From the NCBI GenBank assembly GCA_023213395.1, contig CM041465.1, positions 211,861,741-211,925,740 of the forward strand: DNA of 64,000 bases, given 5' to 3'. This document shows, piece after piece, positions 1,591-60,200 of this stretch. Every line of letters starts with the position of its first letter. The first letter of the stretch is position 1. The position numbers and the translations under genes are program-made. The stretch comes from Cycas panzhihuaensis. Its lineage: Eukaryota; Plantae; Cycadophyta. The notes beneath the pieces were generated by a model. It was not told the origin of the DNA. It saw only the letters and a program-made list of their open reading frames with translations, and ran no database searches.

Positions 1591-2002
1591 TCTTGTAAGG
1601 GGAATGGTTAAGACCCCTAAAGTTACCACCACGCACATGCCCTTGGCCTACTCATATTAGATGAGGAACATCATTAGCTATCTGGTGTATTAGGTGGTAG
1701 GATGAGATGAGAAACCTTTCTTATTTTGGAGTTTAGTGACCAAGGCTATAACTGGAGAGGGTGAGTACCTTGGTTAGTAAAGCTATCACCACTAGATTTG
1801 TCGCTAGGTATAAGACTAGCATAGGTGGACAAACAAGTCAAGGGGGTATAGCACCTTCTTTGTAGTCTGTATACTGATGTACATTGAGCCAAGTGCTCAT
1901 ATACCAATATATTGATTCTTTGATTTACCACTCATGGGTAGGCACCATTAGATAGGATAATAGCTAAAGGCTTCCCTTAGAGACCCATAAACTTAGAGCC
2001 TA
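1591..2002 (+). ncRNA. Putative cis-acting structured RNA in the Copia A leader (copy 1)
   Basis: GC-rich island in an AT-rich leader, colinear with the reverse complement of 26914-27322. Conserved stems: agggg/cccct (1598-1618), accaagg/ccttggt (1739-1774), gagc/gctc (1886-1898), long-range ggtggta/taccact (1693/1926). Confidence 0.6.
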
Positions 2003-2021
2003 GAAACCTTCTTAAGGACTA

Positions 2022-2180
2022 GGATACTTATCAAAACTTTATTTAGAACATCTATAAATTTAAAGAACCCTTATAAAAACTTTATTTGGAACATCTATAA
2101 CTTTGGAGGATACTTATCAAAACTTTATTTGGGATATCTATAGCTTTAGGAGACACTTGGTAAAACTTTATTTGAGATAT
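2022..2180 (+). repeat. 43-bp tandem repeat (about 3.7 copies) immediately before the gag ATG
   Basis: Core aaaactttattt at 2033, 2076, 2119 and 2162, spaced exactly 43 bp apart. Confidence 0.9.
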
Positions 2181-2181
2181 A

Positions 2182-10650: not shown

Positions 10651-11199
10651 ATAATTGAGTTGACCACACTTATGTTATAAATGTAGAGTTGTTACATATA
10701 TTTCTAATTAGAATTATTATTTATATAAGTAGTTCAATTTTAACCTACTATCAAGCCCCTTTTATAAGACTAAAAAAATGCTACTTTAATTGACGAGCAC
10801 CACCTTAAAGGCTATAGACATCCAATAATCTATCTTTTCTTTTATTTTTTTGTTTAGTAGGTAAATAGAACCTAATTTTAATTAAAAATATTTCACTTAA
10901 TTTGGACATTAGGACATGAAGTTATAATCATTTTTATGAGGGGTATTATTATTATTCTAAACCATAATATTATTTATCAAAATTTTAAGGTCATTACAAA
11001 ATCTATAGAACTCTAAATCACCTTAGACTAGGCTTATTAAAAGCATATTCCAGTCCTCTTTCTATTAAAAAAAAAGATCTAGCGTACGGGGCAAAGATAT
11101 ATAAGTTATAAGTCTAAATAAGTTATAGTGACCTATTGACTAATAATAACCAAGCAAAGTAAGATGTCCTCAAGTGGTAGCAAAATGTTCACTAAAAAA

Positions 11200-13555
11200 T
11201 GTTAGACTGAATAGAGAGCAGAGTAAAGAAGGTAAACATAAATATTCAAGCCATATTGTAAATGTAATCGAAATACATCATTATATTAATCTATTTTTAA
11301 GAAGAGTGAATCAAATATCCTTTGAGAAGATGGTGTTAAAGAACACTAGGGATTTTGGCCATAAAGAATAAATATATGGGAGGAGGATAGGATCCCTCCT
11401 TAACCTTAAATTTAAAATATAATAAAATAATAACAAAACATAATAAAATAATCTTAACTGACGGCTAGGGGCAGCTCACATGGTCCTAATGCAAGGTTAG
11501 GTGATGAGCATTAACCCAACATTCTCCTCCTTAATGGTTATCACATGTATCTTCAACTTCTCTTTGAACTTGTGATACTTGTACTTAAGAAAAACTTTGA
11601 ATACTTGTCCTTTATCTTAGCATCATCCTTGAAGTAATCAACTTACAATATTATTCTTTTAATAATATGTGTCTTAAATGGTTTCCAAGTAGGTGTGGCT
11701 TGATCTAAATGAGTAGGAGTTACTCTATTAAGATATTTATCTTTTACTTTAATCAAGTCCAAGGTACATATAATCTTATCAAATGCAACATTAAAGTCAT
11801 CAACTTTATTGAAGTCTACACTAATACATGCAACATTAGTCTTTTCATTAAAATTCACCAGCTCTAACATCTGTCTCACAGGAAAAGTATCATGAATATA
11901 ATTAGTAACATTTAAATATAAGGAATCTCCTCTATAAATCCATTCTAAGGTATCCCATATAGATTTATAAGTAGTTAACTCACTTACACTAGAAAATACA
12001 TTATCATCTAGTGCACAAAACATGAGCGCTAAGGTCTCATTATCCATTTTCATGTCTTTTTTAACATATGGGTCATAACCATCTTTTAAAAGATTTCACA
12101 AATAATTTGTAATAAAGTATGCTTTCACTATTTTAATCCATAGTTAAAAATCATTTCCATCAAATATAGGAAAACCTATGTTACTTAGATTCATTGCCAT
12201 TGTATAAAAGACTTTAATACATAATAAAAAAGGTATGATTTTTAATGAATAAATAAGAAAAAATTTAACCTCAAATGAATAAATGACTTGAAACATGCAA
12301 TTAGTCTATTTTCACAAGAACTTTCAATCACAATTTTAACATAGATTCCTCTTTAATCAATGAAAAATAATAACTTAGTAATAAAAAATAAATATGCAAT
12401 AAATCTCTTTTTAAAGCAAGATAGGAGGAATATAATGCTCTTTCTTGAATGATCTAAATGTACCTTGAAAAGCTTTAAAGAGGTAAAAGAATGACTTTAA
12501 ATAAGCAAAAGAATATGCCTTAAAGAGCTTTAAGATCAACTTTATAAACTAGAATATCAAATAACAGCTTTAGAGTATGGTTAGAAGGTGTTTGAATACA
12601 CCAATTTGACATACTTGATCTTAAAGAGGTTCCTTCTCTTTAGGAGTCCAAAATAGAGATAAATGGCTACAAAAATAAGTTATGTACCTCTAAAATTGGT
12701 AAAAATCTGTCAACACCTGATTAGTAACTCAAGAATAAATAAATATATTGAATTAGAGCAAAACTTTTTCTTGAAATATTTAAAAATATATCCAATTACG
12801 TCTAAATAGGATCCTTAACTTTATTAGATTTAAAACCATAAAATATAGTTCTAGATCATAATAAAACCTATTTCAATGTATAGAGAATTAAAATATCTTT
12901 CGATGATCTAATCGGGAGGCTCGAGTTTTAAAAATATTAAAATAATAATAATAATAATAATAAAGGTAGCTTTGAAATCTTTAGAATCTACCCTTTTAGA
13001 ATGAATATTAAGGTCACATGGACCGAAATGAGAATGCCTACCCGATGACGAAGGGAGATAACTAAAATTAAATACCCACAGATTTGAGATTATATCAAAT
13101 TTGATTAAATTTATTTCAAACTTTATAAAAAATAAAATATTTCATGTAGATTTACACAGGTATTAATTAGCAATAAACAAACACAAAAACTATGATTAAA
13201 TGATTACAAATCGATAAAAAAATGGATTGATTTGATCACAGGGGGAGGGCACCCAATATCCAAAGTAAATACCATTTATTTATTTTTTTAATATCATGTA
13301 GATAACAAATGTGGAGAGGAAATAGATTGATTAAATACAAGAGCACCTAAGTAAGGGATTGCTCAAATCATATTTGATGAACTACAAGAATTGATAGAAG
13401 AATCCAAACCCTTTTAATTGGAATCCTAGGGATAGATATTCCACCTAAGAGTCTGTCCTCATTGGCTTACTAGGAAATGGTAGCATAGAAGAGATCTGGC
13501 TAGGCGACAATGAAGACGCAGGTCTATTCCAATGATCAAAGTGCCATAAAGAGAT

Positions 13556-13598
<43 letters not shown>

Positions 13599-14963
13599 AT
13601 ATTATGAAAAAATATAAGAGAAACCTTATGATCATGCAACGATTATAATCTATCATGCAGTTATGTGATGCCATGCAGATGGAAATGTACATATTAAGAA
13701 AGGATGCAGCTTTGTATCCTAATGGTAATTCCAACAATGGTTGATTGCGGGTGATGCACATAATCACAGAGTGAAATCCTCTCTTTAAAGATCATCCATA
13801 GGTTTTCCAAGGTTTTTAAATCATGTGCAAAATAATCATATGTATATTGAGATAGCTTATTGTAACTTCCAATTAAAGATCATCAAAGTTAAAAGATAAC
13901 AGTCTGTAGAAGTAAGTAGTCTAAGCAACCAAGTAGTGTTCCCTTGGAAAAGAACAATCTCTACTCTCTAGAAGTAAGTAGTCTAAGTAGCCCAAGACTG
14001 AGCACTAAAAGGAACACTCTCTTATAGTGACTAGTCTTCACTACCAGTCTCTTTATATTCATAGTTCAAGGAGAAGGGAGATAAAGCATATAAGATTAAT
14101 TGTTACACTGGATAACTATCAAAAATATTCAAATGGGAGAAGGCATAGATTGTATTATTTTTATAGGCAAAACTATTTGACCAAATGTTTAACTATATAC
14201 AGATTATAACACAAATATTCAACCAAAGATTACAATGGTGGAAATGAATATTAGAGATAAATGTAAAGCTAGAGTCATCAATGGAGGAAGGACTTATTCA
14301 ATACATAGATAAGAGGATAAGGGCTAAAAAATAGAAGGCTTATACAATACAATATGATCTTATCACTCTTAATGTTAATAGAGAAATATTTCAACACACA
14401 CACACACACACATACACATATATAAAAACTCATGAATAAACCTAGTAAAGTGATGGTAACTAGTATGTAGAGGACCATCTTCCGAGAGTGAGATCTCCTT
14501 TTAGGAGAGGTGAAACTTTAAACTGATTTCTCAAATGAGTAGATGAGTCTACTAGGAATCCAACAAGTAGTCATATGTTGCACTTTCACTGAGTGTATGA
14601 GAAGCTAGAGGCTATGCACCTAGGTTTACTCTAATACCAAATGTTGTTCTAAATAGAGAGCAAAGCGAAGTAAGTAAATATAAATATTCAAGCTATATTA
14701 TAAATGCATTTGAAATACATCATTATATTAATCCATATTTGAGAAGAGTACATCAAATATCCTTTGAAAAGGTGGTGTTAAAGAACATAGAGGGTTTTGG
14801 TCCCAAAGAATAAATATGCAAGAGTAGGGCGGGAGCCCTCCTCAACCTAAAATTTGAAATACAATAAAATAATAACAAAACATAATAAAATAATCTCACT
14901 TAATGGTTGGGGGTGGCTCACTTGGTCCCAATGCAAGGTTAGGTGATGAGCATTAACCCAACA
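11200..14963 (-). mobile_element. Non-autonomous Copia-related LTR element with mini-gag (TR-GAG-like), copy 1
   Basis: LTRs 11200-11521 and 14642-14963 (TG..CA); TSD AAAAA; tRNA-iMet PBS (ctctaatacca, 14629-14639); PPT ttctcctcct 11522-11531; no pol. Confidence 0.9.
11523..12200 (-). pseudogene. gag: Mini-gag ORF: Copia gag N-terminus, novel middle region and RNase H-terminal tail
   Basis: MAMNLSNIGFPIFDGNDF..DGYD..LALMFCALDDNVF..KSIWDTL..VRQMLE..QATPTWKPFK..KYHKFKEKL; a few in-frame stops. Confidence 0.8.
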
Positions 14964-19496: not shown

Positions 19497-22216
19497 GTTA
19501 TTTTACTACTGACTTAGTAGGTAAAGGGAGCATTTAAAGGCCTTTATTTACAAGTAGTAGGAGCATGGAGCTTAGAGTTCCTTTTTGGTTCCTCTCTCCT
19601 CTTCTTTTCTACTTCTTCCTCTATTCCTTAAAATTTAATGGTGCATATAGGGCAGGGGAAACTCTATCAAAATTTTTCTACAAGGTACCATAGATATTAT
19701 CCCTTTAACTTATATTTTAATTTAATTTTTAGTAATTTAGATCATCTTAAGAAACTTATTTTTGTCATAGAGCAGGTTGATTAGTCATGATACTGTCAAA
19801 ATCCACCTAGAATTATCTAAAAATATATTTGCTAACTCCACTAAATTTAAGAACTACCTAGGGCAAGAGAGATTCCACCAAACTTTTTTAGCATTACCTT
19901 TAAAGGTATTGCCTTTTTAACTCTTCTTTTTCATTAATTTATAGCATTTTAAAATAATTATAATAACTTTTTTAATGTCATAAGTCTATCTAGCAAGCAA
20001 AAATACTATTAAATTTTTTATAAATTCCTTTCTTATTTTGTTTATGCTTTTGTGTGGTATTTAATGATTTACCCACCAAGTTGGCTATACAAGAAAGGGA
20101 TATTGGAGAAGTGGATGACTCCCCATTAAGGCTATAGGCACATTCAAGGTGTACTTATTTGCCTCCATTTTTTTTATTATTATTAAAAAATAAATAAAGT
20201 AACAAAAGTAAAATTTGGTATAATGGACCCTTCTTATACTTCAATCATTTCATTAAAAAAAGAAAGAGAAGAGAAGGATATGACTTCTTTCTTTACCTTC
20301 CGTTATTTACCCCAAGAAATAAAATGAATAAAATAAAGTACTCCTCCCTTTTTCATCCCTCTTTTCTTTATTGCCCATTCACACTTTATAAATAAAAGAT
20401 AAAAGAGAGAGAGAAGAGAGTAGAACACTCTCTTTCTGCTCATTTATTCCACAAGAAGAAAAAAAGAATGAAAAAGAAAAAAAAAAGATTGAGGATAGAG
20501 AGGGAGTGCTTATCCTTAGTTTGTTTACACATGCATTAATTTATTTATCCTTTCCCTCTCCTTTATTCATGTAGTTCTAATTAGAGAACTAAGAGAAAAG
20601 AGTAAAACAAGATATTCACATTTCACAAGCATGCTTGTTAGTAAGACTGAAGAGGGTATAAGGGTCACATTTGTTATGAGTCTCCAAACCCAAAGGTCTT
20701 AATTATGAATTTAATATAAGTTAATTATTATTTACATAAAAATCCAATAAGCATATATTTGCATTATAGTTGTGTGTTTTATATCCCCTCTTGTCCCCTT
20801 GTTTGTCCTAGTCCTCTATCTTCACCTTAGTGTTCATGTCCAAATGGAACATAGTGTCTATTATAGAGTTTACTATCTCCCTCCTTAGATAAGGATCTTC
20901 TTTGCCTTGGATCCTTTTCCATATTATAAGAGAGGTCATTCCCCCTTATAGGTTATGCCCTCTAGAAACCATATTAGGGACTCATTAATTAAGGGTTGAT
21001 GGTATACCATTCGCCCTTCCATTCTATATTATACTTTATATTTCACTTTAGGGTAGCCCAACTAGTAAGGCCTTATTAAGTTTACAAGCATCACATTCCC
21101 TCTTATTCTCTCATCAAGGTAATAAGTGCATCCATTTACTTGTTCTTATCTCTTATTTTAAAGGGTAGCTCTCACATGCATTAATATTCTTGAAGATTGC
21201 AAGCCCTTCTTCCCTTAGATCCCTATCAGTTTATATCCCTTAACTCCTTGCCCATCTAGTATACCTCAATGGTAACCCCACCAACTATGGATCATTGGAC
21301 CCTTACTACTCAAATGCTTTAGTGGTCCCAGATAACCAAGGATGTCTATACCTTTCCTTCATATAACCCTATTAGGATAGATGAATCTTACCCACCACAT
21401 AAACTTACACCAACTTATCAAAATCTAGTAGGATCCCCACTCATGTCATTGGAACTACCTAGGTGTAGTCCACTACATCCTTATTCAAACCATTAGCCTA
21501 TACATTCTAACAGGATCTATCACATGTAACTATGTCAAATCTCCAACCTATTCATACCCTAAAGAAGCCATCTAAGATCATCACCTCATTAAAGACACAC
21601 TTTAATGGGCTTTCTTTAGTTCCAACATCTTCAACCCCTAATCCTACATAGATCTCTCACATGTTTAATATTAAAAATATTAGTCCAAACTTACCTCCAC
21701 TTGTATCTCAACCCCAATAGGGTGGCTACATAAGCCACTTTGATAACTCCCTTAAACTATAGCTTCCATATTGACCCCTTTCTCAAATATAATGGGATTG
21801 ATCCCACCTTCATACTTTACCCCACCTATCTCGCTAGCTTCAAGACTTCATGCATTCATCATCCAACCTTCTAAGGTTTTAGTAAACCCTACTATTTGAC
21901 CTCACTTTATACCTTGCCATCCATCATTGGGGGTATGATGGGTCATATCCTACACTCTACTTAAATTATAGTGGGCTTACTCCTATCCTATATATACCAC
22001 CTAACTACCAACGCATTAGGCCTCAACTATATCCCACATACAATATGGATCTTCTCCGCCTGTGTGGTATAGCCCCTCTATCTAGGGGCCCATATGATTA
22101 AAACTAATTTTTACATCCCCTTGTTTATCCTCCTCTTATGCCCTTAAATATGGTTTTCCCTCAAATAACTCCTATTTAAGAGGGGATACCTCATCAAGGC
22201 TAGAGTAATACTAGCA

Positions 22217-22548
22217 TGATGGAGCCGAGGAGCAGAGCAAGACATCATAACGTTCTCATCTTGAGTACAACAAAGAATTTCCAATAGAATGGCGGTGTTA
22301 ATAAACACCAGGGAGGTATTCCCAACCCTTAAATAGAGAATTCGGGGAGGCATCGAGCACCATCACCCTAGCTGCATAATAATTAAGGTTAGTTTAAAAA
22401 ATATTAAAATAAATAATGGTGATACGTACCTCAAATGAGTGGTCATCTGAGCTGCTATCGAAGCGGCTCAAGGTACCTTAGGGGCCCTCAAAGGCGCCTT
22501 TGAGGGCCTTAAGCGCCCAGTGCACATACATTAGGATTATTCCCAACA
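22217..22548 (-). repeat. 3' LTR of Copia C
   Basis: Near-identical to 29999-30326; adjacent to the PPT. Confidence 0.95.
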
Positions 22549-22559
22549 TTCTCCCCCAT

Positions 22560-25500: not shown

Positions 25501-26750
25501 CTTTCTTATTTGTATCTAAAGTTTGAAATAAATGTTCTTTATAGGTCATGTGGGTGGAACAACCTGGAATCAATGTACCAACTATCATCCTCTTCTTCCC
25601 GGTGAAAAACTAGATAGAAATAACCTATTATTGATTTTAGATTCGATGTATTTGACACATGCCTTCTAGGGGTGGTCCATGTTTTAAAAACACTTATCTT
25701 CAAGTGACCATTTCTACGATAATAAGTGCAATATAGTTGATCTCTTTTTCATAACTAAGATTTTGATTCCTTGGTGGAGAGTGATCAAAGTTGAGAGGTC
25801 TCCCCTTTCTTCATAGAATTGAGTATTATTATTTCTTGGTTGGTCATGATAGTTTTGAGGTGTTCTAGAAGGTTATGGATTCCCATGACAATGTGGGCAA
25901 CAAGGATGATTATCGACTTGTCTTCGTTGGTTTGGGTTTCTTTGAATGTTCGAATGTCTTGGAGAGTTTTCATGTTGTGGGGTCGTCCTTGTCTATTATG
26001 AGGAACTTGGTATCGTGGAGGATATTGTCTAGTTTCATTTCTAGGGTTTTCATCTTTTCTCCTTAGAGGAGATTCATTTTGTTTTGAGGTGCCATCTTGA
26101 GGGTTAGGTTGAATGTTGGCCTTTGTAGCAAAGGCATGTTCTAAAGTTTCATTGGCAACTTGTTGCTCTTCTATGGACATGAGCATAGCGAAGTTGTTCT
26201 ACTTTAAGGGTACTTAGGTCTTTAGATACACTAATACTAGTAGCCACCATTTCAAAACCTCTAACCCCTCCTACACATCCAACCATTCCTTCAACTACTC
26301 TTTCTTCCCTTAACCTATCCCCAACCCACCTCATTTCCTTAACTATATCTTCAATCTTCCTCATAAATTCACTTATTCATTCATCACCCATCATACCTAA
26401 ATTTTCAAACTTACTTCTTAAGTTTTGTAATTTAGGGGACACGACCCCTTCGTATATAAGCTGTAAAGTATCCCAAGCCTCTTTAGACTTAATGGATTCA
26501 CTGACTCGTGGGAAAACATGATCTTCCAATGCACAGAAGATAAGGGCTAATGCTTCATTATCTTTTTTGACATTTTCCTTGTATGTAGCTTTTTCAAGAC
26601 GCTTGGATTTGATCCTAAGTCATTGTAACCAGTTCTCACTATATCCCACATCTCATTTGCTATGAGGATGGGCCTCATCCTCCTACTCCAGTTAAGAAAA
26701 TTATTTCTATCAAATTTAGGAATAATCATATTCCCAAAACTAGACGTCAT
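22560..26750 (-). pseudogene. gag-pol: Copia gag-pol of element C (frameshifted)
   Basis: MTSSFGNMIIPKFD start; LRSDNGGEF integrase; RT 23518-24030 ([35 protein letters not shown]); RNase H. Confidence 0.95.
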
Positions 26751-26913
26751 TTTAAATTAAGGTTGTATAAAATGTGATAAATGCAATAGCAAAAATATTT
26801 GAATGTAAAAAATTTGAAAGAACTTAAATAAAAGAAGTTATTTCCAAATATATATATATATCCCAAGGTTTTCCAAAGTTTTAAATAAATGAACTAGGAC
26901 CTAGAACGGCTAA

Positions 26914-27322
26914 TAGGCTCTAAGTTTATGTTTCTCCTGGGGCAACCTTCGGTTGCTATTCTGTCTAATGGCGCCTGCCCACAGATGGCAAAACAGGGAC
27001 CCTTTATACCCAGGTATAGCGCCGGGCTCTATATACCTCAGTACGTGGGTTGCTAAGAAGGCTTTGACACCCCCCTGAATTGTTGGTCCACCTGCGCCGG
27101 ATTTATGCCTAACGGATCTGATCTAGCGGTGAAGGTTCTTGAACCAAGGCACTCTCCAGGTCTAGCCTTGGTCTCCAAACACCATAAAATGAAAAGGTTC
27201 TGCACCTCAGCCTGCCACCGTATACACCTGATAGCTAATGGCTGTCATCATCCAATATGAGTAGGCCGATTAGCGTGTGCGGGGTGGTAACTTCAGGGGT
27301 CCTAACCGTTCCCCTTGCAAGG
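26914..27322 (-). ncRNA. Putative cis-acting structured RNA in the Copia C leader (copy 2, better preserved)
   Basis: Homologous to 1591-2002. Hairpins accaaggc/gccttggt (27143-27172), ggtat-agc/gct-atacc (27013-27037), gcaacc-gaa-ggttgc (26942-26956); long-range ggtggca/tgccatc. Confidence 0.65.
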
Positions 27323-27785
27323 CTGGAAAAAAGTGTGGTTCAATTCAGAATTATCTTATTTAATGTGGAAACTAATCTATTTAGCAATGTGGTCTTGCTT
27401 AGAAAAAGAAAATTCCTTTGATAATAAAAAAAATGCTCTAAGCAAGATGAAATGAAAACTTTTACAAAAGTCTTTTATTTATTTATTTTTTTAAATAATG
27501 TCCTTCAAACAAATGTAATATGCCTTTGGAAAGAAATACAATTTTCCTTTTATAAGTGCAAGAAAGATGATATTTTTCAACAACTTTGATACAAAAGTAT
27601 AATGATCAATAAGAAAGTAATGATGCATTTGAAACAAACTTAAAAAAAAAAATTCACTTATGCAAAACTTGAAATAACTTTTGAGAATAAAGAGTTTTCA
27701 AAAAATGCCAATTTATCAAATAAGTAATGTAAATCTTCAATATAAAGAGACTTTCCCTTTTGTATAAAAATAACTTTCTTTGAGT

Positions 27786-27899
<114 letters not shown>

Positions 27900-29119
27900 C
27901 CTTATAAACAAATGATGATTCAAAATAACTTAAAATGCTTGTAGAAAGATTAAGCGAAACTTTGAGTAAATAATGAGGTATGAACTAGAATTTTCTTTAA
28001 AAATTTTGAAAGAAGACAAGCTTGTTAGGATGTATGTATATGCTCAACTTTAACAGATTGAAAACTATATTGAATAATGTCAGAATAACTTAAAATTTTA
28101 CCAATATGTAGATTGATGAGGTGTGAATCCAATGAAATAAACAGTTTTGAAAATGGGTACCAATAAATCATAATTTAAATAATGCAAAGTTATGGACCTC
28201 CTTATGGAGCCTAACAAGAGCAGGGTAGGCAAGAATTGCATAAAATTACTAATTAACCTTTAGAAAAAGTTGAACAAAGGATCAAATATTATTTACGAAG
28301 TAATCAATGTTCTTCCAATTGAAAATTTTTTAAAAAATTAGTGTAAAAAATAACAGATTTAGGGCAATAAGATACCTCAACTTTGAATGATTTGAAAGAT
28401 AAGAAAATTTGTCAAAATATATAGAAAAATATGTCAAAATGAAGAGAAATGAGTCAGCTTCCCAACGGTCGACTAATTGAAATCGATAGAAAATGGAAAA
28501 GTTATAGTGAAAAATGTAAGAAGTGTGTTTATGGAGAATGTTAAAAATAAGCAAAACCAACTAAATTCCTTATTTCAAATGATTAAAGTATTAGTGAAGA
28601 TGAACTCAAAAATTGAAGTAAAAAGTGGGTATTAAATTCTATACAAAATAGATCATTATAGAGGAAATTTGGGTAAAAATAGTTTACGTAAATAAATGAC
28701 ATGATCTAAAACCGATTTTGTTAAAAATGCGAAAATTGTGAAATTTTGAAAGTCTAATGTTAAAATGGTCGAACAGGTCAAATTGGCACCAAATTGGTCT
28801 TATGACTAGTCGAAATCGGTGTATGGAAAAGTTTGATCTATTGGAGGTGGTTTCGCCTAAAAACGATAAGCGCTGAGAAGTTATGGCCACAAAAGTGCCA
28901 ATAACTCTATGAAAAATAAAATTAAAAAAAAAAAAAAGTTTAAAAATTAAAAAAACTTCTTAAAAATGGGTTCAAGATGGACCTGGGATTGAACCCAAGA
29001 CCAATGAGAAACTAAAGACCTCCAATGCCAGGAGGGTAAACTCACTCGCCGAGTTTTAAGACAAGAATGAATTTAAAAACCCAAAACAAAAGCGAGTAAC
29101 GAAAAACTAAAATAGTACA

Positions 29120-29310
29120 AGGCGAATATAATCAATGCACAAAGGCGATTTAATGAAACGCAATAATCAACGCACAAAGGCGATTTAATGAAACGTAAAA
29201 TGCGTAAAGGCGATTTAATAATAAATATAATGAAACGATAGAATATGGCGTAACGCACAAAGGCGATTTAATGAAACGCAATGGCAAGATGATTTAATGG
29301 AACACGCAAC
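29120..29310. repeat. Irregular tandem repeat with core aaaggcgatttaat (4 exact copies plus degenerate ones)
   Basis: Seen directly in the Copia C leader. Confidence 0.85.
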
Positions 29311-29998
29311 AACGGTAAAAGACGTGGCAAACGGCCTAGCTATGCTCGAATAGCGCCAGAGGCAGGAGCCTGAACTAGACACGCCAAGACCAGAGAGGTA
29401 GCGCACAGACAAAGAGACAACGCAGGAGCACAGAGGCGAGCACGCCAAAGATAACGCAAAGAGGTTGTGCGCACCTACAGAGAAACAGAAATACCAAAAC
29501 GGCACAAGAGCAAAATGAACGGAGGCAGAGAGTGCAAAGAGACAACATAGGCTGAGTAGCGTTAGCAACAAGCGAGGCACATAGGCCTTAGCAGCATTAA
29601 TACAGAGAGAGGGTATCAATAATGCAGGAGAGTTGTTCAGTACAGTTGCAAAGAGTGCACAGGACAACAGAGAGCTGGCTCAAGCTATATATATGGATGG
29701 TAATAATACTACAGATCTATGGAGCGCTTATATATTGAAGATCAAAAGTACGAAGCAAAAATATATATAAAAATTTATTTATTTAGAGATCGAGGAACGA
29801 AGAACCCGGTTCCAGATGGTTGTGCAAACTTCGAAGTGAGAACTTCCTTTATGGTGGATGAAATCTTGATCCGCTTCTCCAAAGGATAGGTGAGCTCGCT
29901 AGAATCTCAACGAGCAGTCATATAGATACGTTTCGCCAGATGTATGAGTAACTAACAACAGAAAATAGACAATAGTATCACCGTGGCTCGATACCAAA

Positions 29999-30326
29999 TG
30001 ATGGAGCCGAGGAGCAGAAAGCAGACATCATAACGTTCTCATCTTGAGTACAACGGCAATTTCAATAGAATGGTGGTGTTAATAAACACCGTGGAGGTAT
30101 TCCCAACCCTTAAATAGAGAATTGGGGAGGCGCCAGCGCCATCACCCTACCGCACAACAATTAAAGTTAGTTTAAAAATATTAAAATAAATAACGGTGAT
30201 ACGACCTCAAATGAGTGGTCGGTCCGAGCGGATATTGAATGGATCAAGGTACCTTAGGGGCCCTTAAAGGCGCCTTTGAGGGGCCCTAAGTGCTTTGGTG
30301 CACGTACATTGGGATTATTCCCAACA
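29999..30326 (-). repeat. 5' LTR of Copia C
   Basis: TG..CA, adjacent to the PBS, TSD TAGCA. Confidence 0.95.
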
Positions 30327-32623
30327 TAGCATATGATAAGTGCCCAATCAAGTTGCTTAAATCCTTCCTACATATATGTATCCCTATGGGAATAATGGGT
30401 GTAGAGGAAATATACCTTGTGTGACCAACCCATATTTTTATCTAATTGAGACAATCCCCCAACCTATATAAGTACATCATACCCACCATCAACACCCTTA
30501 CCCCCTATGGGTGGTGCCTAAGACTAATGGACTTATTAATCATAACTTAGACCCATGGACTCATGGACCCAACCTACAAGGTTGGAAGGTTCCTTCCTAG
30601 TGATCTTCCTTAATCTTATAATAAAAGTGATGCAAAAGCCACAATAGGAATGTAAAATGGACCAATTTTATTAATGGAAGATGTAAAGTACATAAAATAA
30701 GCACTTGAAAGACACTAAAGAAAGATTAAGAGCACCAAAGTGTACTAAAGTATAATCTCAAATGAGATACAAAATACACAACCACCTTCTTTTATACACA
30801 TTAGGCCTTAAATAAACAAAAGAGGCTTTCTTCTAAACAATGCCATTAATGGGGCAAATGGTCTTCAATTCTATTAGTAGTTACAAATAATCCTATGTAC
30901 ACAAGCTAATGACTACCACTGACCATTGGGAGCCTTCATCATAAACACATATAAGTAAGTTTCATAGGCTATAAGTGGTTATATGACAGGTCCCCCTCCC
31001 TAAGATGTTGAGTACTCAAAGTGGAAAAGGTGTAAATATTACTTAATAAAATTAGCAAATTTCTAAGTTACTTCATCTAAACCATAATTGACCTATTACA
31101 CCAAGTATTTAGAGATGGTCCTATTATGAAGGTGGTATTATTGGCTAACCAAAATTTGCTCTAGTAGGATGGTGATAAGTTACTCTTTATTAAGGATTGA
31201 TAGGGTTATTTGGGAGATGGTATCCTTACTAAGGCACTTCTTAAGACAAGAAACATGAAAGACAATCTAGATTTTAGTATTAGATAGGAGTTCAAGGATG
31301 TAAGTAACCTCATCAATTCATTGAAGTACTTTGTAAGTCTATAATTACATAATCTAAGCTTCTAACTTTTATGACTCTTAAGGGATTATTTCTTATAGGG
31401 TTGGAGATGAAGAAAGACAAGGTCACTAATGGAAAAGGAATAAATGGAACAGTGGTGGTTGGTAAGTTGTTTCATATGATTTTATGCTACAACTAGGTTG
31501 TATTTAAGGGTGGTGAGAATTTGATCCATATCCTTGAGTTTTTACTAAATAGACATGGTGTGGAGGTTAGTGGCTAACATATGATGGGATGGTAGGGGAT
31601 ATCTATATAGAGCTAGAAATAGGGATATTTCAATAGTTGAATGATGAAAAGAATTATACTAATATTCTATGAGGGCTAGTTAGGAGGTCCATTTAGCTTA
31701 GTGTTCATAGGTAAAGCATTTGAGGTAAGTTTCCATAATTTTGTTAATGGCTTCTGATTAGTTATTTGTTTAGGGATTAAGGATGGACTCATATTAAATA
31801 AAGTTCCTAGTACTCTAGAAAATTCTTTCCAAAATGTGTTAGTAAACTTGGGGTTATGGTCATATACTATAGTAGACAAAACCCATGAAGGCAAAATATA
31901 GTTTAGATGTATAAATCAGAAGGTGAGGTGCCTTATACAATATATAGATTGGAAGAAAATAGGTATATTTTATCGCCTATTAATAACTACCCAAATCAAA
32001 TTATATCTGATAGATATTATTAACCCTATCATAAAATCCATGGTAATATCCCACCATTTTCCTTAGGAAATATGTAGGGGTTGAAGTAGTCAGAGTTGGG
32101 CCTTAGTGTTAATCTTATTCCTTTAGCATATGTCAGATTTTATGATAAATGTGAGGATGGAAGGTTTCATATGTGGCTAGTAAAAATTTATATGAATATA
32201 TCATTATGTTTTATTGAAACCTAAGTGACCTCCTTATAAGAGTGGAGTAGCATTCTATCATGATACTAAGGATAAAGGTGGATGCAAGAGGTACAAAAAT
32301 ATAATTTTTATATAGAAGCATATTTTATTAGTGGACCAATCCTTATGATTTTGGGCTTTAGAAGCCCATTAGAAATGATAGACTAGGCCTGGTTTTCAAT
32401 TGCTAAACCCTTTATCCAAGTTAGTTGAGGTGAGGAAATAGCTTAGATAAGGGATTTCGGGGAAGTATTATCAACAACAATATTATATTTTTCATTCTTA
32501 TAGGTGATTGTAAAATAAAATAACTATAATAATTTAATCCATTTAGCCTAGTCTTTAGATAATACTGGTTAGTCTAATAAGCAACAAAGGCTATGGTGAA
32601 CTTAGAGCCAAGGAGGTATTGAT

Positions 32624-44306: not shown

Positions 44307-47300
44307 TTATGTTATAAAAAACCTATGATGCCCTACCTATGTACTTACATATAGATCATATATGGAGTCTTACATATCTATGTGTTTTTCATATTATATA
44401 TTAATTCATCCTACCAATTTATGAGTATACTTAAATTACTATTATTGATAATTGTAAAGCTTGTAGAGAAGTCAACTAGGTGTACTATCTATTACTAGCC
44501 CTATCTTGACTACATGAAATACCCTTTGACTCTATTCACCAAAGAATATTTTAACTAGCCTATGGAATCATTACCCTATTTACATGAGGATTATACTCAG
44601 AGTTATGAGATATAAATGCCTTCTAACCATGCTTAATTTATATATGCAAACATGTCTTGCCCACAAAAGAAAGAGCATCATCATTTAAAGAAATTGTGGT
44701 ATATTGGAGTAATTTTTCACCTATACAATGATTTGTTAATTGTGCCTTATATGAAAATTTATCATTGGTTGACTTTTCAAGCCTTTAATTTGTGATTTTA
44801 CGATATACAAATTATATGCATCACCTATTGACTATATAGAGACAAGTTGACTATAAATTTTTTAGCTAGAGTTATTATTTTTTAAATATTTTATGACATT
44901 AAACTAGATTGGATAATTTTATGAAGTCTATTAAAAACCCTTAGCAGATAGCCTGAGGTCATATGGAGCATAGCCATGACTAGGATCCTAAACAAAAAGG
45001 GCTAAACTTAATTTCTTAAGAAATATTCATTTTTAAAGGACATATTAAGACTCTTTTTAGTATAAATTTCCATCTAAGAGTCTATTCTTCATGACATTAG
45101 TTATGTTAGGAAGAGAATTTAGAGATAGATAAAATGAGTGGTTGTAAGGCATATTTTAAAGGTTAGATAATAGATATTTTAATTAGTAAAGTTGATTGAA
45201 GTATTTTTGATATAATAAAACTAGTAATTTTTTAGAAATTTAAAATTTAATTTGGTAATTTTTGACAATTTTAAAAGCTCTTAAGCATATGATGATGTAT
45301 ATTGATGATTGTTGATGAAAGAAAAAGGAATCTTAGTTGAAATTTAATTTAAAATGTCATATTTAAGGCTAATTAATGATATTTTAAGGCTTAAAATTAA
45401 ATATGTAGAAAGTTATTTAATGAAAATATGATATGGGTTTCTTATACATGTTAGACATTATTACGAACCTTCTTAAAGGTTAATCAATTATTATTAATGA
45501 AAAAGGCATCTACTGAAGAGTTGTGACCTTTTATTAAAGGGTCCTATTATGCACCTATAAATGAGGCCTTCAAGGTATTGGATATCATTCATTTTTTTAT
45601 CAACTAAATATATTGGTCTTGTGACTATTAAATCTATTGACCAACTTTGTGTTTCATGGGTGCTCGCTAAATCGATTGATTGTACTCCTGTTATGAAATT
45701 GGTTCATAATTAGTGGTATCATACTGTACAAGATCCATGCCTAGAAGATATTTATTAGTAACCATATAAATAAGAATCAAATTCACTGTTATGAGCCCTA
45801 CATACACAAATCTATAATTGGGTTGAGGCAGAATAATTCCAACTACAACAACTGGCTAATACATCTACAACCGTATTAATATATTTGCATTATATTCAGC
45901 ACAAATCAACACATCCACATTCAGTTGATCAACTTTAATATATTTGTCATTGATATAGTCACTTCTGCAATCTAGTTCCTTGCTCTCATAATATATCATT
46001 GTGACCAGTAACCCTATCCACTATAGAAAGAGTCGTATAAAATTACTACACATTATTTAAGGTAACATGTGGTTCTTCCATTTGCATTGCCTTATTTTTA
46101 TTTTCATTCCATTACCATGCTTGTCTTCTTACGTCATCTCTCCACTTTCTCTACATTGTTGGTTGACAACCACTATCAAAATCACACAGCCATCACACCT
46201 CTTCACGCCTACTACTTTAATACAAACAAATTAACATTGCATTAACACTTTGTCTATTTTGTCCGCTCGTTCTTTTTATTCTGTCAACATTCTGAAATAG
46301 ATAATCAATCATCAACATTGTCGTTAGACGTGTTAGTTAATGCTCATCACTCCACTCCCACAATTTACACATATGAGTGCACACATGTGAAGGTAAGTAA
46401 GGTAAGGTTAAAGTTACTTTAGTTAAGAATTATTTTATTATATTTTAAATTTTAGAGGTTGAGGAGGTTTCCCCTCTTTATCAAACTATATCTTTACTAG
46501 GGTGACAAACCATGGTATCTTTTCATACCACCTTCATTTTAAACATTTATAATACTCTCTCAAAGATAGATTAAATACAAAGATTATTATGTTTATGTGT
46601 TGATTATTTGATATATGCTCCGCTCTGTCTCTATTTTACAAACCTTGATTTGGTAATATTATTTGAAATCTAGGTGCAAGGGTACTAGCCCCCTTTAACA
46701 TTAGCCCCCGATTATATTCTTTTATACGTGACCTTTAGTTATTAAAGGGGGCTTCTTAACTTTATAATTTTTTTTTTTTTTTTTAAATTTCTCCTTAATA
46801 CATAGGGTACCTAGATAATTTCTACAATATCTCTTCATTGGGGTATCAGTTTCTGATGAAACCTATCCTGTCGAGTCTAGAATTTTATGGGTTATAGTTT
46901 AGACTGGCTATTTTCTATATTTGGAGCTGATTTGAACTGATTTTAATGAGATAAAATTAATCATTTTTTTTTTAAGCCTTTTTAAGTTATTACCACAAAA
47001 TCCCTTCTTTAACGAGTTATACTTTATCACCAAGAGATTATTTTTTACCCAAATCTACTCCGTAGTAATCTATTTTCAACAAACTTCATTACTGCTCACT
47101 TATTTTATTTTTTAGGATTTGTTTTAATTACTATTTTAATAAGTGAAAATGACACTTTAGTGTTTTTTTAATATATTTACATAAAAAATACTACTTACAT
47201 TTTTAGTTGTATCTCCTCAACCAAAAATTGGATTTCCAAACTGTAAGATTTGTTGGAATCCTAATTCAGAGCACTACTACCTGGAGGTATTTTTTGCTTG

Positions 47301-48131
47301 ATTTGATTAATTATATTGTAGGTTTGAGTAGGTCAAAGTTGACCTTGTTTATGTTGCCTATTTTATTAATGTTGAAGGACACTTTGAATGCTTTCTTTAA
47401 TATCTTGAGCTTCATAGCTCAGAATTAAATACCATCTGATTCTGGTGAAAGATTTTTAGAGATTTACAATTTTAAATAATTTTAATTTTATTTTAAATCT
47501 ATTTTATAGGTTCTCTAAGCTATCAAAGTTGAGGTATATAGAATCACCTAGTTTGTCATTATTAAACATTTTTATATACTATTTCTTAAGTTTATTGGCT
47601 AAAAGCATATTAAGCATCTCTTTAATTTATATTTGATCATTTTACATTATTTTATAAGGGTTTTACTAGTATTTCGTGATCTTTTCAGCCATATTCTCTC
47701 GTTAAGCCCTAAAAAGGGGACCATATCATTTATACTTTAAAATCTTGACTTGCATGAACCCATTCTTAAAATGATCAGCTCCATTGAATAGATATTTTAT
47801 TAATCTTCAAATTGTTATAATCTCATCTTAATTTGATATTGTTTAGTACAACTTTGAAGCTGATCAACTTGAAAATTAAATATATACCAATAGGCTTGTT
47901 CTCTTAACCTTTTAAGGAATTCTTTCTTTTATTTTTCTTACCGATTACTTATTATACGTGTTTAAGGATTTCATTTAACTTTTATATAGTTTCTTTTAAG
48001 CTAATTTGTAGCAGAAAATTAATTACATACATCTAAAGAAAGTGATAAACTATGTGGTCCTACATCCTAAAATGGGTATAATTCGCTCTTTTTTGGAAGT
48101 TTCTTCTTCACATTTTTCATCCTTCTAAAGA

Positions 48132-48133
<2 letters not shown>

Positions 48134-48183
<50 letters not shown>

Positions 48184-48202
48184 CGAGAGAGAGAGAGAGA
48201 GA
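48134..48202. repeat. (TA)n(GA)n microsatellite
   Basis: Seen directly. Confidence 0.95.
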
Positions 48203-48819
48203 TTTTAGATTTCTTACATCATACATCTTCATTATAGACAAAAGGAATACTTATTAATCTTATATTGAAAAAGGTCATTTTTTTTGCTCAAGTTAATATT
48301 TATTCATTTGAAAAACCAAAAGCTTAAAACTTTTATTTCTTCATCATCAAGAAGTTTTATTTCAAATCTATATATTTAAAGATCTTAGTTACTTTGCAAG
48401 TTTGCTTATATAATCATTCTATTTCAAAGTATATTTGAAATTATATATTATAAGTTTATTGATTTATTAAGTTCTTTGATTCCTTCTAAAGGCACATATT
48501 TTATTAAGAAGTACAAAAAGTTCACTTAGTAGAAACATCCTTGATTCATTATTATACTTAAGGTTGCATAAAGTGCATTTTACTTCAAAGGAACATTTCA
48601 TTTCATTTTATTTTTAAGGGTATTTTTAAGGGCATTACATATTTTGCTTAAAAGTTATTGGCAAGACCACATCATTAATAACTTATTGACATTAGCTTAT
48701 ATTCTTTCTAGAATATCTTTATCATCTACTTGTATTAGTATTAACATCATTTAAGGAGTTCTCTATTTGAAAATCATATTTCTTTTCGATTATATACTAA
48801 AGTTTCCTATAAAATTGCA

Positions 48820-49539
48820 ATGGATCTAAATCAAATATGATTCCTTATATTTGATGGCTATGATTTTTCACAATGGCATAAAATAATGCAAACTTACTTT
48901 ATCACAAATGATCTTTGGAGATACCTACAAGATGGATATGACCTTAATAATAAAGAAGACATAAAAAAAGATAATGAACCCTTAGCTATATTATTTTCCA
49001 CAATAGATGATAATGCTTTTTCTAAAGTTTATGAAATAACAACCTCTAAATCCATATAGGACACATTATATTCTATTTATGGGGGAGAAACCCTCAATCT
49101 AAATGAATTTAACATTGATGTTGTTGAGCATGTGAGACAGATGTTAGAGTAAGTTATTTGTGATGAAAATACCAAGAAAGAGAATTAAGTCAAATGAATG
49201 ATCACCTTGTTGTATGTGAAGATCATCCTTCATTTGAGGGGGAGAAACCTTATAATATGAAAGTTACTCACAAAACAAAGATTTCAGAAGATAAAGTCAA
49301 AGTTCTAAGAGATAAAATTAGAGTTGCAGCCATTCACCTTCATTCAAATCAAGCTACACCTATTTGGACTTCATTTAAACCACTCAATATTAAAGAAACA
49401 CATATTACTGAAAGGACAATGTAGTTGATAATGATCAAGTTAAAGGACAAACATTCAAAGTTTTTTAAGTTTTTCAAGTTTAAGTTTCACAAGTTTAAAG
49501 AGAAGACAAAGATATTCGTGATGACTATTAAGGGGAGAA
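48820..49539 (+). pseudogene. gag: Mini-gag ORF, homologue of 11523-12200
   Basis: MDLNQI.FLIFDGYDFSQW..DLWRYLQDGYD..LAILFSTIDDNAF..VRQMLE..QATPIWTSFK..KDKHSKFF..KFHKFKEK; has stops and a frameshift. Confidence 0.8.
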
Positions 49540-50561
49540 TGTTGAGGTTAATATTCATCACTCCACTCTCACCCTTTATACATGTGAAGGTAAGTAAGGT
49601 AAGGTTAAAGTTACTTTAGTTAAGAATTTTAGAGGTTAAAGAGGTTTCCCTCCTCCCTCAAACTATATCTTTACTAGGGTGACAATCCTTGGTGTATTTT
49701 GATACCACCTTCATTTTGGACATTTGTAATACTCTCTCAAAGATGGATTGAATACAAATATTATTATGTTTATGTGTTGATTATTTGATATATGCTCTGC
49801 TCTATCTCTATTTTACAAACCTTCAAGATGCCAACACTGTAATATAAGGAGGTGTTTTAACTAATAATCTATTTAAATATGGTATATACATTATCATCAT
49901 TAGTCCTTCAAGAAATAAATGAAGAGCCATGGAGGTGCATTAACAAGCAAGATTAATTCGAGTTTGGATTCGCTAGCTACGCTATCACCTACAATATATA
50001 ATGTGCATATAGTGAAGTCAAGACATTACCTATTAACATTTATTTTGGAAAAATATTATAAAGACATCTAAGATATTTTACAACGCAAGGGTTATTACAT
50101 AATCGTGATGTAATATCACTGCCTCAACTTTTGAATCTTCGCCATTACCCATCATCATCCGTGACAATACCATAGAATACCCATGTGTTATTTCGCAAGG
50201 CAAGATAGTGTGTTATTATCCATCTTCTTAACCACCTAATCTTTTCTTATGCAAGATTGCTCGTGATAATAAGAAGCTCCAACCAACTAGATTTCTAAAT
50301 AATAATTCCTATGCATAAAACTTGTCATCGTAACCCATTATATCACTGAGAGTACTCAAGCTAAAATTGAGGTCATGTGGCGTATACACTAAGGCACAAG
50401 TAAGAGTCTCAGATAAATAAGACAAGGAGCCAAATAAACTTTATAGTCGACATGTAGAGAGCTGGACAACCCTTAGAGTGGCTTATGCATATCACTATAC
50501 AAACGCATTGTTACTTGAATAAGAAAGCCATCTAAAATTGTGTGGCGTGGTTCTGGGTTAA

Positions 50562-57200: not shown

Positions 57201-60200
57201 ACTCTTGAGGACAAGACTGTCCTTGCTGATATTATAGTACTTGACATTGAAATTGACTACATTATGTTGTTAGGATGCCCATGGCTCGATCAGATGGGAG
57301 CCATGTGCTCATCTTATTGGGGGCAACTTAGATTTGTCCATGAGGGGTGAATGAGAGTTATCTCTCAGGAGATTCCTTCTATTAAACAACCATGTCAATC
57401 CCGCCAAGCAGGTTATAGCCAAATGAAAGGCGACAAAGGCCTTTCTACCCATGCCTCGACTTGTTCTATTGACATCCCCAACTCATCTCTTTTGGAAGAA
57501 GGCCCTTCATCCTCTTTTTCAACCTCATATATTTGGCCCCTATTGGTGTTGAAAGTTACAACCACCTTGCCATACTTAGTGATGATGAGTTTGACGGTGA
57601 GGATGATGACTTCCCTCACCCCATTTCCCTTTTGGGCATGAGTAGGGGGCACCTCCTACATTCTAGATTTTGCTTTGGAACCCCTATAATTGGAGAAACT
57701 AGTTCTCCTCTTGTATCTCATGTCATTACCCCTGTTGATCAGGTGATCCTTCAGTCTTCCCCTTCATTTCCATAAATAGGTAACGAGGTTGGGGAACCTC
57801 CTGTTGTCCCTTGTGAGGGACCTCTTTCCGCTTTTTCTAGGAGTCCATCGTATACCAATTGGCGTGACGACCACCATGGTCCCGCTGTCTCTACTCCTTC
57901 ACCCTTCGCCTTCTCGAAGCGTGGTCATCCATGGGGTGGACTACTTTGAGAATGATGAAGCCCTGCTTGAGCACTTAGCAGGATCCATGCCCAACCTTCC
58001 TTCTAGTCACCGTAGTCTTGGTTATTAGAAGGTTTTGGCTATTGGGTCTTCTCTTGCTGACCCAACTCTATCCCTTGTTCCATCCCTTCCTGTTGACCGA
58101 TCCCCCCTCCACTTTGAGGAGGGGAATGCCATGTGCATGGGGGTAACCCAGGACATAGTCCTTGCCCCAGGCAAAGTCATTAAGGTAGGGCAAATGCTCT
58201 TCCGATGAAGTGAATGAGTATACCCTTCTATTCTAAGAGTTTCAAGATGTTTTTACATGGGACTACTCCGATATAAAGGGAATTGATCCTTCAATCATAA
58301 CCCACAACCTTACCACCATTCCTAGCACTCGTCCTATGCGTCAGAAACAATGCCCTCTTCACCCTAAGCTCTTAGTTCAAGTTAAAATAGAACTTGAGAA
58401 ACTCCTCAATCCAACATTCATCACTTCCATCGACTACCCTAACTGAATATCTAACATTATCCTAGTTGCTAGAAAGAATGGGACAACTGGATATGCATTA
58501 ATTTTGTGACATTAATAATGCATGTCCTAAGGACGCTTCCCACTTCATTTTATTGATTAGATCATCGATCGAACCATCGCTTTTGAAGTTATGTCCTTAA
58601 TGGATGCCTTCTCCGTTACAACCAAATTCAAATTTCTCCTAAAGATCGCCATAAATGGCCTTCACCACTTTGTGGGGTACTTTTGCCTATAAGGCAATGC
58701 CTTTAGACTCAAGAATGCGTGCACTACTTATCAAAAGGTAATGCAATTCATTTTCACGATCCGATTAATAAATCCTTCGAGGTCTTCATGGATGACATGA
58801 TGGATCTCTCATGCATTAGAGCCCATCACCCGCCGATTTCGGCCATCTTTGCATGATGCCGCAAATACCATGTAAGCCTCAACCCTCTTAAATGTATGTT
58901 TACCATGACCACTAGCAAACTCCTTGGTTTTCTTGTGTCAAAGCAAGGAATCCAAATTGACCCTGATAAAGTTAAGGCCATCCTTGACATGTCAACTCCT
59001 AAAACCGAACAATGATTAAGTCATTTTAGGTAGGCTTGGTTTCTTAAGATTTGTTTGGCAAACTACGCCATAAATACCAAACTGCTCACTAACCTATTAA
59101 AGAAGGGGGCTTGTTTACTTGGTCTTCTAAGGCCCAACAAGCCTTCAAGTACTTAAGGAAGCCCTTGCTTCTCGCTCCAACTTTGGTGCCGCTCTTTGAT
59201 AGGCTATTCATCCTATATACCTCGACAACCAATTAATCTCTTGGAGCTATGTTGGCCTGTGAGGATGATTCGAGAGTCAAGAGGGCTATTTACTTCACCA
59301 CCACGCCCTTGTGGCTACCGAACTTAATTAATCCCCTCAGAGAATGAATGCCTCTCCTCGTACATGCAACCAAGAAGTTTAGGCATTATTTGCTTAGAAA
59401 TACTACCGTGATCATTCAACTGATCCCTACATTATTTACTCACCCGACTTGACCGATGTAGGACCTGCAAGTGGGTTGTCCTCCTTCGTAAATTTAATCT
59501 CCACATCATTAATAGGAAATCAAAGAAGGATGGTAGTGGTAGCACTCATCGACACTCTTATCCCAAACCCTTTGATGTTCCCGCTGATGACTCTCTTCTT
59601 GATAAGCAAATTGTGGCCATCGAGGACTCCCTCCTCATCCGCCATCGATAGTGAATAGTATGGGGCATTGTGCGATATCTCACTTAATAGCAAGATTGCC
59701 CTAATGTTAGTAATAAAGTTAGGTCTCAGATTCAAAGCTACTACTAGACAATACTTTCTTATGGGTGAGGTATTATACAAGAGATCCTTCGATGGGATCC
59801 TTCTTCACGATCACCCCCGATTTAAGTAAACTAGATATTCCATGAATACCATAATGACATTTGCAAGGGCCACTTTGGGGCCAATCCATAGCCCAAAGGA
59901 TCCTCCATATGGGTACTATTGGCCATCCCTCTTTAAGGATGCCCATGTTATGCCTCGAGATATTGGCAATGCCAAGAGCATGCCAACATCACCCACTTGC
60001 CTTCTAAGACTCTCCACCCCATTATATCTCCATGGTCCTTCTCCCAATAGGGGTTGGACCTCATCGAGCCATATCCTCGCCTCTTCATTACAAAGACAAG
60101 TTCATCTTGATCGGTACTGCACCAGTACTTTACTAAATGGGTGAAAGTCATTCTTTGATCACTACCCCTAGTAAGACGATAGCCACCTTCATCTACCAAA

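Follow-up and report, generated by a model that had tools for sequence, protein, structure and literature searches.

Copia A, Copia C and their gag-only neighbours

The stretch of DNA analysed here, 64,000 nucleotides from Cycas panzhihuaensis and referred to below as the window, carries two related Copia elements with long leaders, Copia A on the forward strand and Copia C on the minus strand. These two form the compared pair, the sense sequence of Copia C being the reverse complement of the window. Copia C is bounded by a 5' LTR at 29998-30327 with TG...CA ends and a 3' LTR at 22216-22549 (both minus strand), which pair with each other in a self-BLAST comparison at 87% identity across 339 nt, and a PBS-like sequence, tggtatcgagcc, follows directly after the 5' LTR at ~29995. 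The leader up to the gag ATG at 26750 is 3,247 nt long and falls into three parts, all read on the minus strand: an upstream leader from the PBS to the block (27323-29997), which is AUG-poor on the sense strand and cannot be aligned with that of Copia A; a conserved GC-rich block (26914-27322), recognized by alignment with Copia A, nhmmer, GC content and transversions; and a block-to-gag spacer (26751-26913), which is AT-rich, poorly conserved and AUG-free. The first open piece of Copia C gag (26547-26750, minus strand) encodes 67 aa and is 56% identical to the gag of Copia A, whose ATG lies at 2182 on the forward strand. The 5' LTR of Copia A falls outside the window. Its block, an older copy decayed by deamination and identified by alignment with that of Copia C, occupies 1591-2002 (forward strand), and its AT-rich, AUG-free spacer at 2003-2181 (forward strand) consists mostly of a 43-nt tandem repeat, present in 3.5 copies at 2026-2174 with TATA-like words and no ATG; Copia C has no tandem array at the matching position of its spacer. 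The upstream leader of Copia C has compositional features of its own. Its PBS-proximal kilobase (29000-29997, minus strand) is pyrimidine-rich on the sense strand, with 42% GC, the highest CpG observed/expected ratio of the element (1.10) and 35-nt tandem repeats at 29128-29219, while the segment at 27786-27897 reads, on the sense strand, as 27 consecutive T and then (TA)43.

Relatives of these elements are distant. The closest gag relatives, found among 1.8 billion representative proteins, are fragments of 25-48% identity on short ENA/Logan contigs, and P0001, P0003 and P0008 are distant gag relatives. A homologous-protein search with the 67-aa Copia C gag piece returned no match, and neither did comparison of the gag protein and gag alignment with viral, metagenome and genome contig collections. 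The gag of this Copia group is thus scarce in public protein sets, the best matches for the query region 26550-26750 (minus strand) being short fragments of 43-48% identity. The reverse transcriptase has relatives of at most ~70% identity in Ginkgo, Adiantum and various angiosperms.

The window also holds two gag-only, TR-GAG-like satellites, at 11197-14963 (minus strand; satellite 1, leader of 2.4 kb) and 46336-49823 (forward strand; satellite 2). Each carries an LTR pair of its own and a leader of 2.2-2.4 kb, and encodes a gag N-terminal domain fused to unrelated sequence, at 11643-12200 (minus strand) and 48850-49421 (forward strand), respectively; no zinc-knuckle motif was seen in the mini-gag translation on inspection by eye. 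The block was found in neither of them, either by nhmmer over the window or in the satellite sequence upstream of the mini-gag. The leader of satellite 1 is mildly depleted of ATGs (35 against 47 expected), with one ATG standing 22 nt before the gag start. This leader shares a segment of ~450 nt with that of Copia A (539-988 and 1091-1147 of the window against 12901-12334, 74% identity), and the LTRs of satellite 1 are unrelated to the Copia A 3' LTR region. Leaders in this Copia group therefore look modular, as judged from these alignments, and the segment common to Copia A and satellite 1 is a candidate for the real packaging signal.

A conserved non-coding block upstream of gag

The first-pass annotation had reported a colinear GC-rich block shared by the two elements amid otherwise unalignable leaders and ending about 160-180 nt before gag, and both observations hold. 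The two copies align colinearly with 7 indel events, whereas the flanks cannot be aligned (48.6% identity for the upstream leader, 55% for the spacer), and the distance from block end to gag ATG is 163 nt in Copia C and 179 nt in Copia A. An nhmmer search with the block recovers just these two copies within the 64-kb window, with E values of 1e-142 (A) and 1e-146 (C). A marginal match to the 5' part of the block, at 58105-58162 (minus strand; E 0.03) inside a GC-rich Gypsy-like region, is probably noise. In composition the block is a sharply bounded GC island, with 51% GC in Copia C and 41% in Copia A against 17-27% in the flanks. Its CpG observed/expected ratio is 0.52, no higher than in the coding region, and 0.12 in the decayed copy of Copia A.

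Raw identity between the two blocks is 74%, rising to 80% in the 5' third, and the top 100-nt identity window of the whole element pair lies at the 5' end of the block (81%). C>T or G>A changes in Copia A account for 54 of the 108 differences, or half of them; divergence was therefore measured by transversions, which are less affected by the decay of this copy. By this measure the block is the most conserved stretch of the pair, with 9.4% divergence; the reverse transcriptase core reaches 12.5%, coding sequence as a whole 15.2%, the spacer 25.9% and the upstream leader 33.6%. Within the block, divergence is even over the three thirds (10.0, 8.1 and 9.9%). The C-terminal/linker region of gag, at 56% identity between the two elements, is less conserved than the block. 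The existence of a constrained block is thus solid and lies far beyond chance, and we take it to be maintained by purifying selection across families. Searches with block DNA motifs in metagenome, genome and viral contig collections gave no external copies.

Several familiar identities were considered for the block and rejected. A protein-coding exon is contradicted by stops in every frame of both copies, by mismatches that fall about equally on the three codon phases (11/12/11, for example, within the longest segment free of gaps), by indels that are not multiples of 3 and by the lack of Pfam matches to the longest ORF pieces of the block. No Rfam family reaches its gathering threshold anywhere in the window, and a relaxed search (E <= 10) around both copies gave only noise at E 2-7, with nothing that meaningfully overlaps the block. 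A tRNA or SINE origin was dismissed, as no tRNA-like gene was detected, and so was a CpG-island promoter, the CpG ratio of 0.52 being coding-like. A second PBS near the block was likewise discarded: the PBS-like words at 1405 and 27583 do not align with each other and occur at near-chance frequency. The suggestion that the element is of an undescribed kind has stood up, in that it is non-coding, more conserved than any other stretch of the pair and without an Rfam match. From its sequence, the block appears to be a functionally constrained non-coding element, previously undescribed.

AUG depletion of the leader and putative pairing within the block

The 3.2-kb leader had been described as full of ATGs and hence hard to translate by scanning, which is wrong for Copia C. 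Its sense strand contains 12 ATGs in 3,247 nt, against 44.9 +/- 5.6 expected from dinucleotide shuffles. No other of the 64 trinucleotides is as depleted in this leader as ATG (observed/expected 0.27, z -4.9; the next reaches -2.8), the depletion persists when the (TA)n microsatellite is removed, and the antisense strand does not share it (88 against 73 expected). In 3.2-kb segments taken over the 64 kb, the ATG ratio averages 1.16 +/- 0.17, and none of them comes near the Copia C leader, which has the lowest value. Broken down by part, observed and expected counts are 4 and 16.3 in the 5' part, 5 and 18.2 in the AT-rich middle, 3 and 6.0 in the block, and 0 and 1.3 in the spacer, and the divergence of the LTRs leads one to expect that ~5.6 +/- 2.2 of the 12 ATGs arose after insertion. 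The AUG-free run immediately before the gag AUG measures 432 nt in Copia C, where it reaches into the block, and 245 nt in Copia A, whose decayed leader shows the same trend weakly (13 ATGs against 18.9 expected). A 5' leader that is AUG-poor on a kilobase scale is unusual in itself.

In the established view of eukaryotic initiation, a strand-specific purge of AUGs is the signature of ribosomes that scan the whole leader. The depletion in Copia C thus argues for ordinary linear scanning and, being confined to the sense strand, it speaks against an IRES, an internal promoter for a gag mRNA and a leader intron, since each of these would make upstream AUGs irrelevant. One of the few ATGs inside the block is common to both copies and opens a short uORF, of 14 codons in Copia C (27207-27251, minus strand, ATG at 27251) and of 10 codons in Copia A (1661-1693, forward strand, ATG at 1661). 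The uORF stop falls at the start of a candidate helix arm (alignment columns 112-120) in Copia A and just after this arm in Copia C. Any function of the shared uORF ATG is putative.

As to structure, the first-pass annotation had drawn one nested multibranch fold supported by both copies, a picture that survives in part. Of its 39 base pairs, 32 can form in both copies and 7 are broken in one; the 32 common pairs comprise 27 invariant ones, 4 with wobble changes and a single compensatory one, a change from U-A to C-G in which both steps are transitions of the deamination type. This sole compensatory pair belongs to a long-range helix with a 5' arm, ggtggca, at 27213-27219 and a 3' arm at 26984-26990 (minus strand), corresponding to 1693-1699 and 1926-1932 in Copia A, and RNAalifold also predicts this helix (columns 112-120 / 347-355). 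The individual motifs that had been listed are all present in Copia C, but the aggt/acct and gcaacc/ggttgc hairpins occur in this copy only, and the gctat/atagc helix does not line up fully: its 3' arms in the two copies lie 3 alignment columns apart, and that of Copia C overlaps the 3' hairpin. Minimum free energies show no excess stability over dinucleotide shuffles (z +0.28 and -0.72 for the two copies), and the minimum free energy folds of Copia A and Copia C differ from each other. RNAalifold gives z values against column shuffles of -2.0 to -2.6 for the sense strand and -2.7 for the antisense strand, and on 10 coding control windows of the same pair the values range from -3.5 to +1.2, with 2 of the 10 matching that of the block; the consensus-fold signal thus lies within the range of coding controls, and the sense strand does not outdo the antisense strand.

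The positions of substitutions give a suggestive signal in a test that preserves the substitution spectrum. When Copia C was folded, the pairs broken in Copia A were counted and the substitutions were permuted among sites with the same base, 21 pairs of the Copia C fold were found broken against 32-33 expected (z -3.1, P 0.001); the smallest P among 38 control tests on coding windows was 0.03. The reverse test, in which the Copia A fold is judged in Copia C, gave nothing (z -0.8), and an ensemble-weighted version gave -2.3 for the sense and -2.9 for the antisense strand, with controls reaching -2.8. These models, applied to two sequences, hint that pairing potential is protected in the block, without strand specificity, and a specific multibranch fold is not demonstrated by them. 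The strongest local hairpins amount to -14 kcal/mol per 40 nt and -29 per 80 nt, so that nothing in the block is predicted to be strong enough to stop scanning ribosomes. A highly conserved block segment, ggcctactcatatt (1645-1658 in Copia A), is complementary to conserved 7-mers at the gag start (2200-2206 and 2244-2250) and can alternatively pair within the block (columns 357-366). Conserved complementary 7-mers between block and gag start number 2, against 0.8 expected, which is near chance. For the block and the 3' end of the element, RNAduplex returned a global duplex that carries no information.

What the block may do, and known systems

A retrovirus-like packaging or dimerisation core, that is, a Psi/DIS analogue bound by Gag and holding two genomic RNAs together, is a serious though doubtful candidate. 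The block lies between the PBS (~29995) and the gag AUG (26750), directly upstream of gag and hence in the position of retroviral Psi; it is the most conserved stretch of its element, as retroviral 5' leaders are of theirs; and its substitutions spare pairing potential. In a plant pararetrovirus, moreover, the packaging signal sits inside a structured leader region (PMC5902531). This option, already offered by the first-pass annotation, stays viable but is weakened by the satellites, which seem to depend on a partner's Gag (the zinc knuckle being judged by eye) and lack the block, yet share the segment at 539-988 of Copia A. The absence of the block from elements that must be packaged and reverse-transcribed in trans, by partners as yet putative, lowers the packaging reading and favours a role in expression of the autonomous element's own proteins. 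In addition, the block is 2.7 kb away from the PBS, is conserved between families that have just 56% identity in the C-terminal gag region, and offers neither a prominent palindromic kissing-loop candidate nor covariation support. An element acting at the DNA level on transcription, either as an enhancer of the LTR promoter or as an internal or antisense promoter, is unlikely. It would fit a GC island in AT-rich DNA, the TATA-like motifs and 43-nt tandem repeat of the spacer just downstream, and a structure signal that is not strand-specific, and it has a precedent in the enhancer of the Drosophila copia untranslated leader, in the account of Wilson et al. (1998) given in PMC2829016. However, promoters are usually patchy, whereas the block is evenly conserved over 410 nt with few indels; its CpG ratio does not exceed that of coding sequence; an internal sense promoter would remove the selection that purges AUGs from the 2.7 kb upstream; and a model of DNA-binding sites does not predict substitutions that avoid breaking predicted pairs.

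The remaining explanations are less probable still. The first-pass annotation preferred an IRES-like structured RNA, and a large IRES that recruits ribosomes internally, so that scanning of the leader is bypassed, could be imagined from the size of ~410 nt with its multi-helix potential and from the AUG-free 160-180 nt before the start codon, a spacer that resembles the geometry of type I picornavirus IRESs. This idea is not borne out: the upstream leader is depleted of sense AUGs about fourfold, as expected only under scanning, Rfam models of IRESs and ribozymes give no match, those of IRESs not even at E <= 10, stability is no better than that of shuffles, the consensus fold does not exceed controls and one pair is compensatory, all of which leaves an IRES very improbable. 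A role in RNA processing, export or stability, be it as a splice-bounded exon-like island or as a CTE-like export element, is very unlikely as well. A GC-rich island between AU-rich stretches does look like the contrast of plant exons and introns, and in Copia C a pyrimidine run followed by CAG stands exactly where conservation starts (in deaminated form in Copia A); but the AT-rich stretch upstream is itself depleted of AUGs (5 against 18.2), seemingly as part of a translated RNA rather than an intron, no conserved donor is found at the 3' edge of the block, and the satellites, which would need such elements too, are without it. Finally, there is a slim chance that the block has no present function and is a captured or exchanged segment that moved recently between families. 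Leaders are modular, with Copia A sharing a different 450-nt segment with a satellite, and similarity is greatest in the 5' third of the block (80% identity), but transversions are even across the block, its edges are composition boundaries in both copies, and substitutions spare predicted pairs.

The reading we prefer, tentatively and as a possibility rather than an expectation, is that the block is an RNA module controlling Gag-Pol translation within the full-length transcript. Its conservation, lack of coding capacity and position, the purge of AUGs and its absence from the gag-only satellites are observed; that it acts as RNA, and on translation, and how it does so, is what we infer. In this view, a group of long-leader Copia retrotransposons carries the block as a discrete non-coding cis module near gag, at the leader's 3' end. 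Ribosomes would load at the 5' end, scan the AUG-purged leader and reach the GC-rich block with its short uORF and several alternative GGUGG/CCACC-type pairings, and would then traverse 245-430 nt free of AUGs to the gag AUG. The block may thereby set the fraction of ribosomes that pass, and binding of Gag could perhaps use it to switch the RNA between translation and packaging. Its geometry is fixed in both copies, 163 and 179 nt before the gag AUG with no AUG between. Moreover, conservation is higher in the block than in the C-terminal gag/linker region, which we take, from general Copia architecture, to hold the nucleocapsid part; if so, the partner of the block is probably a conserved one, such as host machinery. 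Against a translational role stand the satellites, which lack the block although they have a gag-like ORF behind leaders of 2.2-2.4 kb; the block is therefore not a general requirement for translation behind a long leader. A narrower proposal, in which the block within an AUG-purged 3-kb leader governs non-canonical initiation at gag, by shunt-like bypass or by regulated re-initiation after the uORF, and perhaps also responds to Gag by switching the RNA between translation and packaging, is improbable; if true, the block would be a new class of RNA element and the first of its sort in plant LTR retrotransposons, common to several Copia families.

In plants, little is understood of the way in which LTR retrotransposons with kilobase leaders translate Gag-Pol and divide one RNA between translation and packaging. 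The locus offers two handles on these questions, a 410-nt non-coding module more tightly conserved than the reverse transcriptase and a 3.2-kb leader cleared of AUGs, and both yield simple predictions for reporter, ribosome-profiling and structure-probing work. A block that turned out to gate translation or to switch packaging would represent a new type of cis-element for Pseudoviridae and also a useful marker for classifying this Copia group.

A literature search found no long conserved block upstream of gag described for plant Copia elements; the conserved non-coding microdomains of Sireviruses lie at LTR junctions and PPTs, not upstream of gag (PMC2829016). Retroviral Psi/DIS and the 5' cis-acting RNA domain of Ty1 (PMC6844567, PMC7969010) resemble the block in being cis elements at the leader-gag junction, among the most conserved parts of their genomes and with multi-helix potential. 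In contrast to them, the block has no sequence or covariance-model match, is 2.7 kb from the PBS and absent from satellites, and its Gag binding is putative; the Ty1 domain, in addition, extends into gag, whereas the block is wholly upstream of it. Picornavirus-type IRESs (the Rfam IRES families) are about as long and likewise have an AUG-free spacer in front of the genuine start codon, but the block differs in lacking an Rfam match, excess stability and covariation and in having its upstream AUGs purged. The leader enhancer of Drosophila copia, as cited in PMC2829016 from Wilson et al. (1998), is also regulatory and lies in the leader of a member of the Copia superfamily; it consists of protein-binding sites acting as DNA, in contrast to 410 nt of even conservation with pairing-sparing substitutions.

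Similar in some respects is the pregenomic RNA leader of the Caulimoviridae, plant elements that also replicate by reverse transcription, where a short uORF, a large stem and a ribosome shunt are combined with a packaging signal atop the structure (PMC5902531). The likeness consists in a long leader, a short uORF beside a GC-rich pairing region and an AUG-free zone up to the first long ORF. The paired part of the Copia leader, however, makes up 410 of 3,247 nt and is cap-distal, and the leader upstream of it is AUG-poor rather than rich in short ORFs. A pararetrovirus-like shunt would be an attractive variant, but its defining geometry is not the one modelled here: the uORF terminates inside or right at the proposed helix arm instead of 5-10 nt before it, and there is no single strong stem. 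In RTBV, a 900-nt AUG-free stretch serves leaky scanning, and the pararetrovirus literature draws from an AUG-free stretch the same argument for scanning as is made here (PMC5902531). Taken together with these systems, the block is rated as a cis-acting leader element of a reverse-transcribing element, of a kind that is known, with this one newly described.
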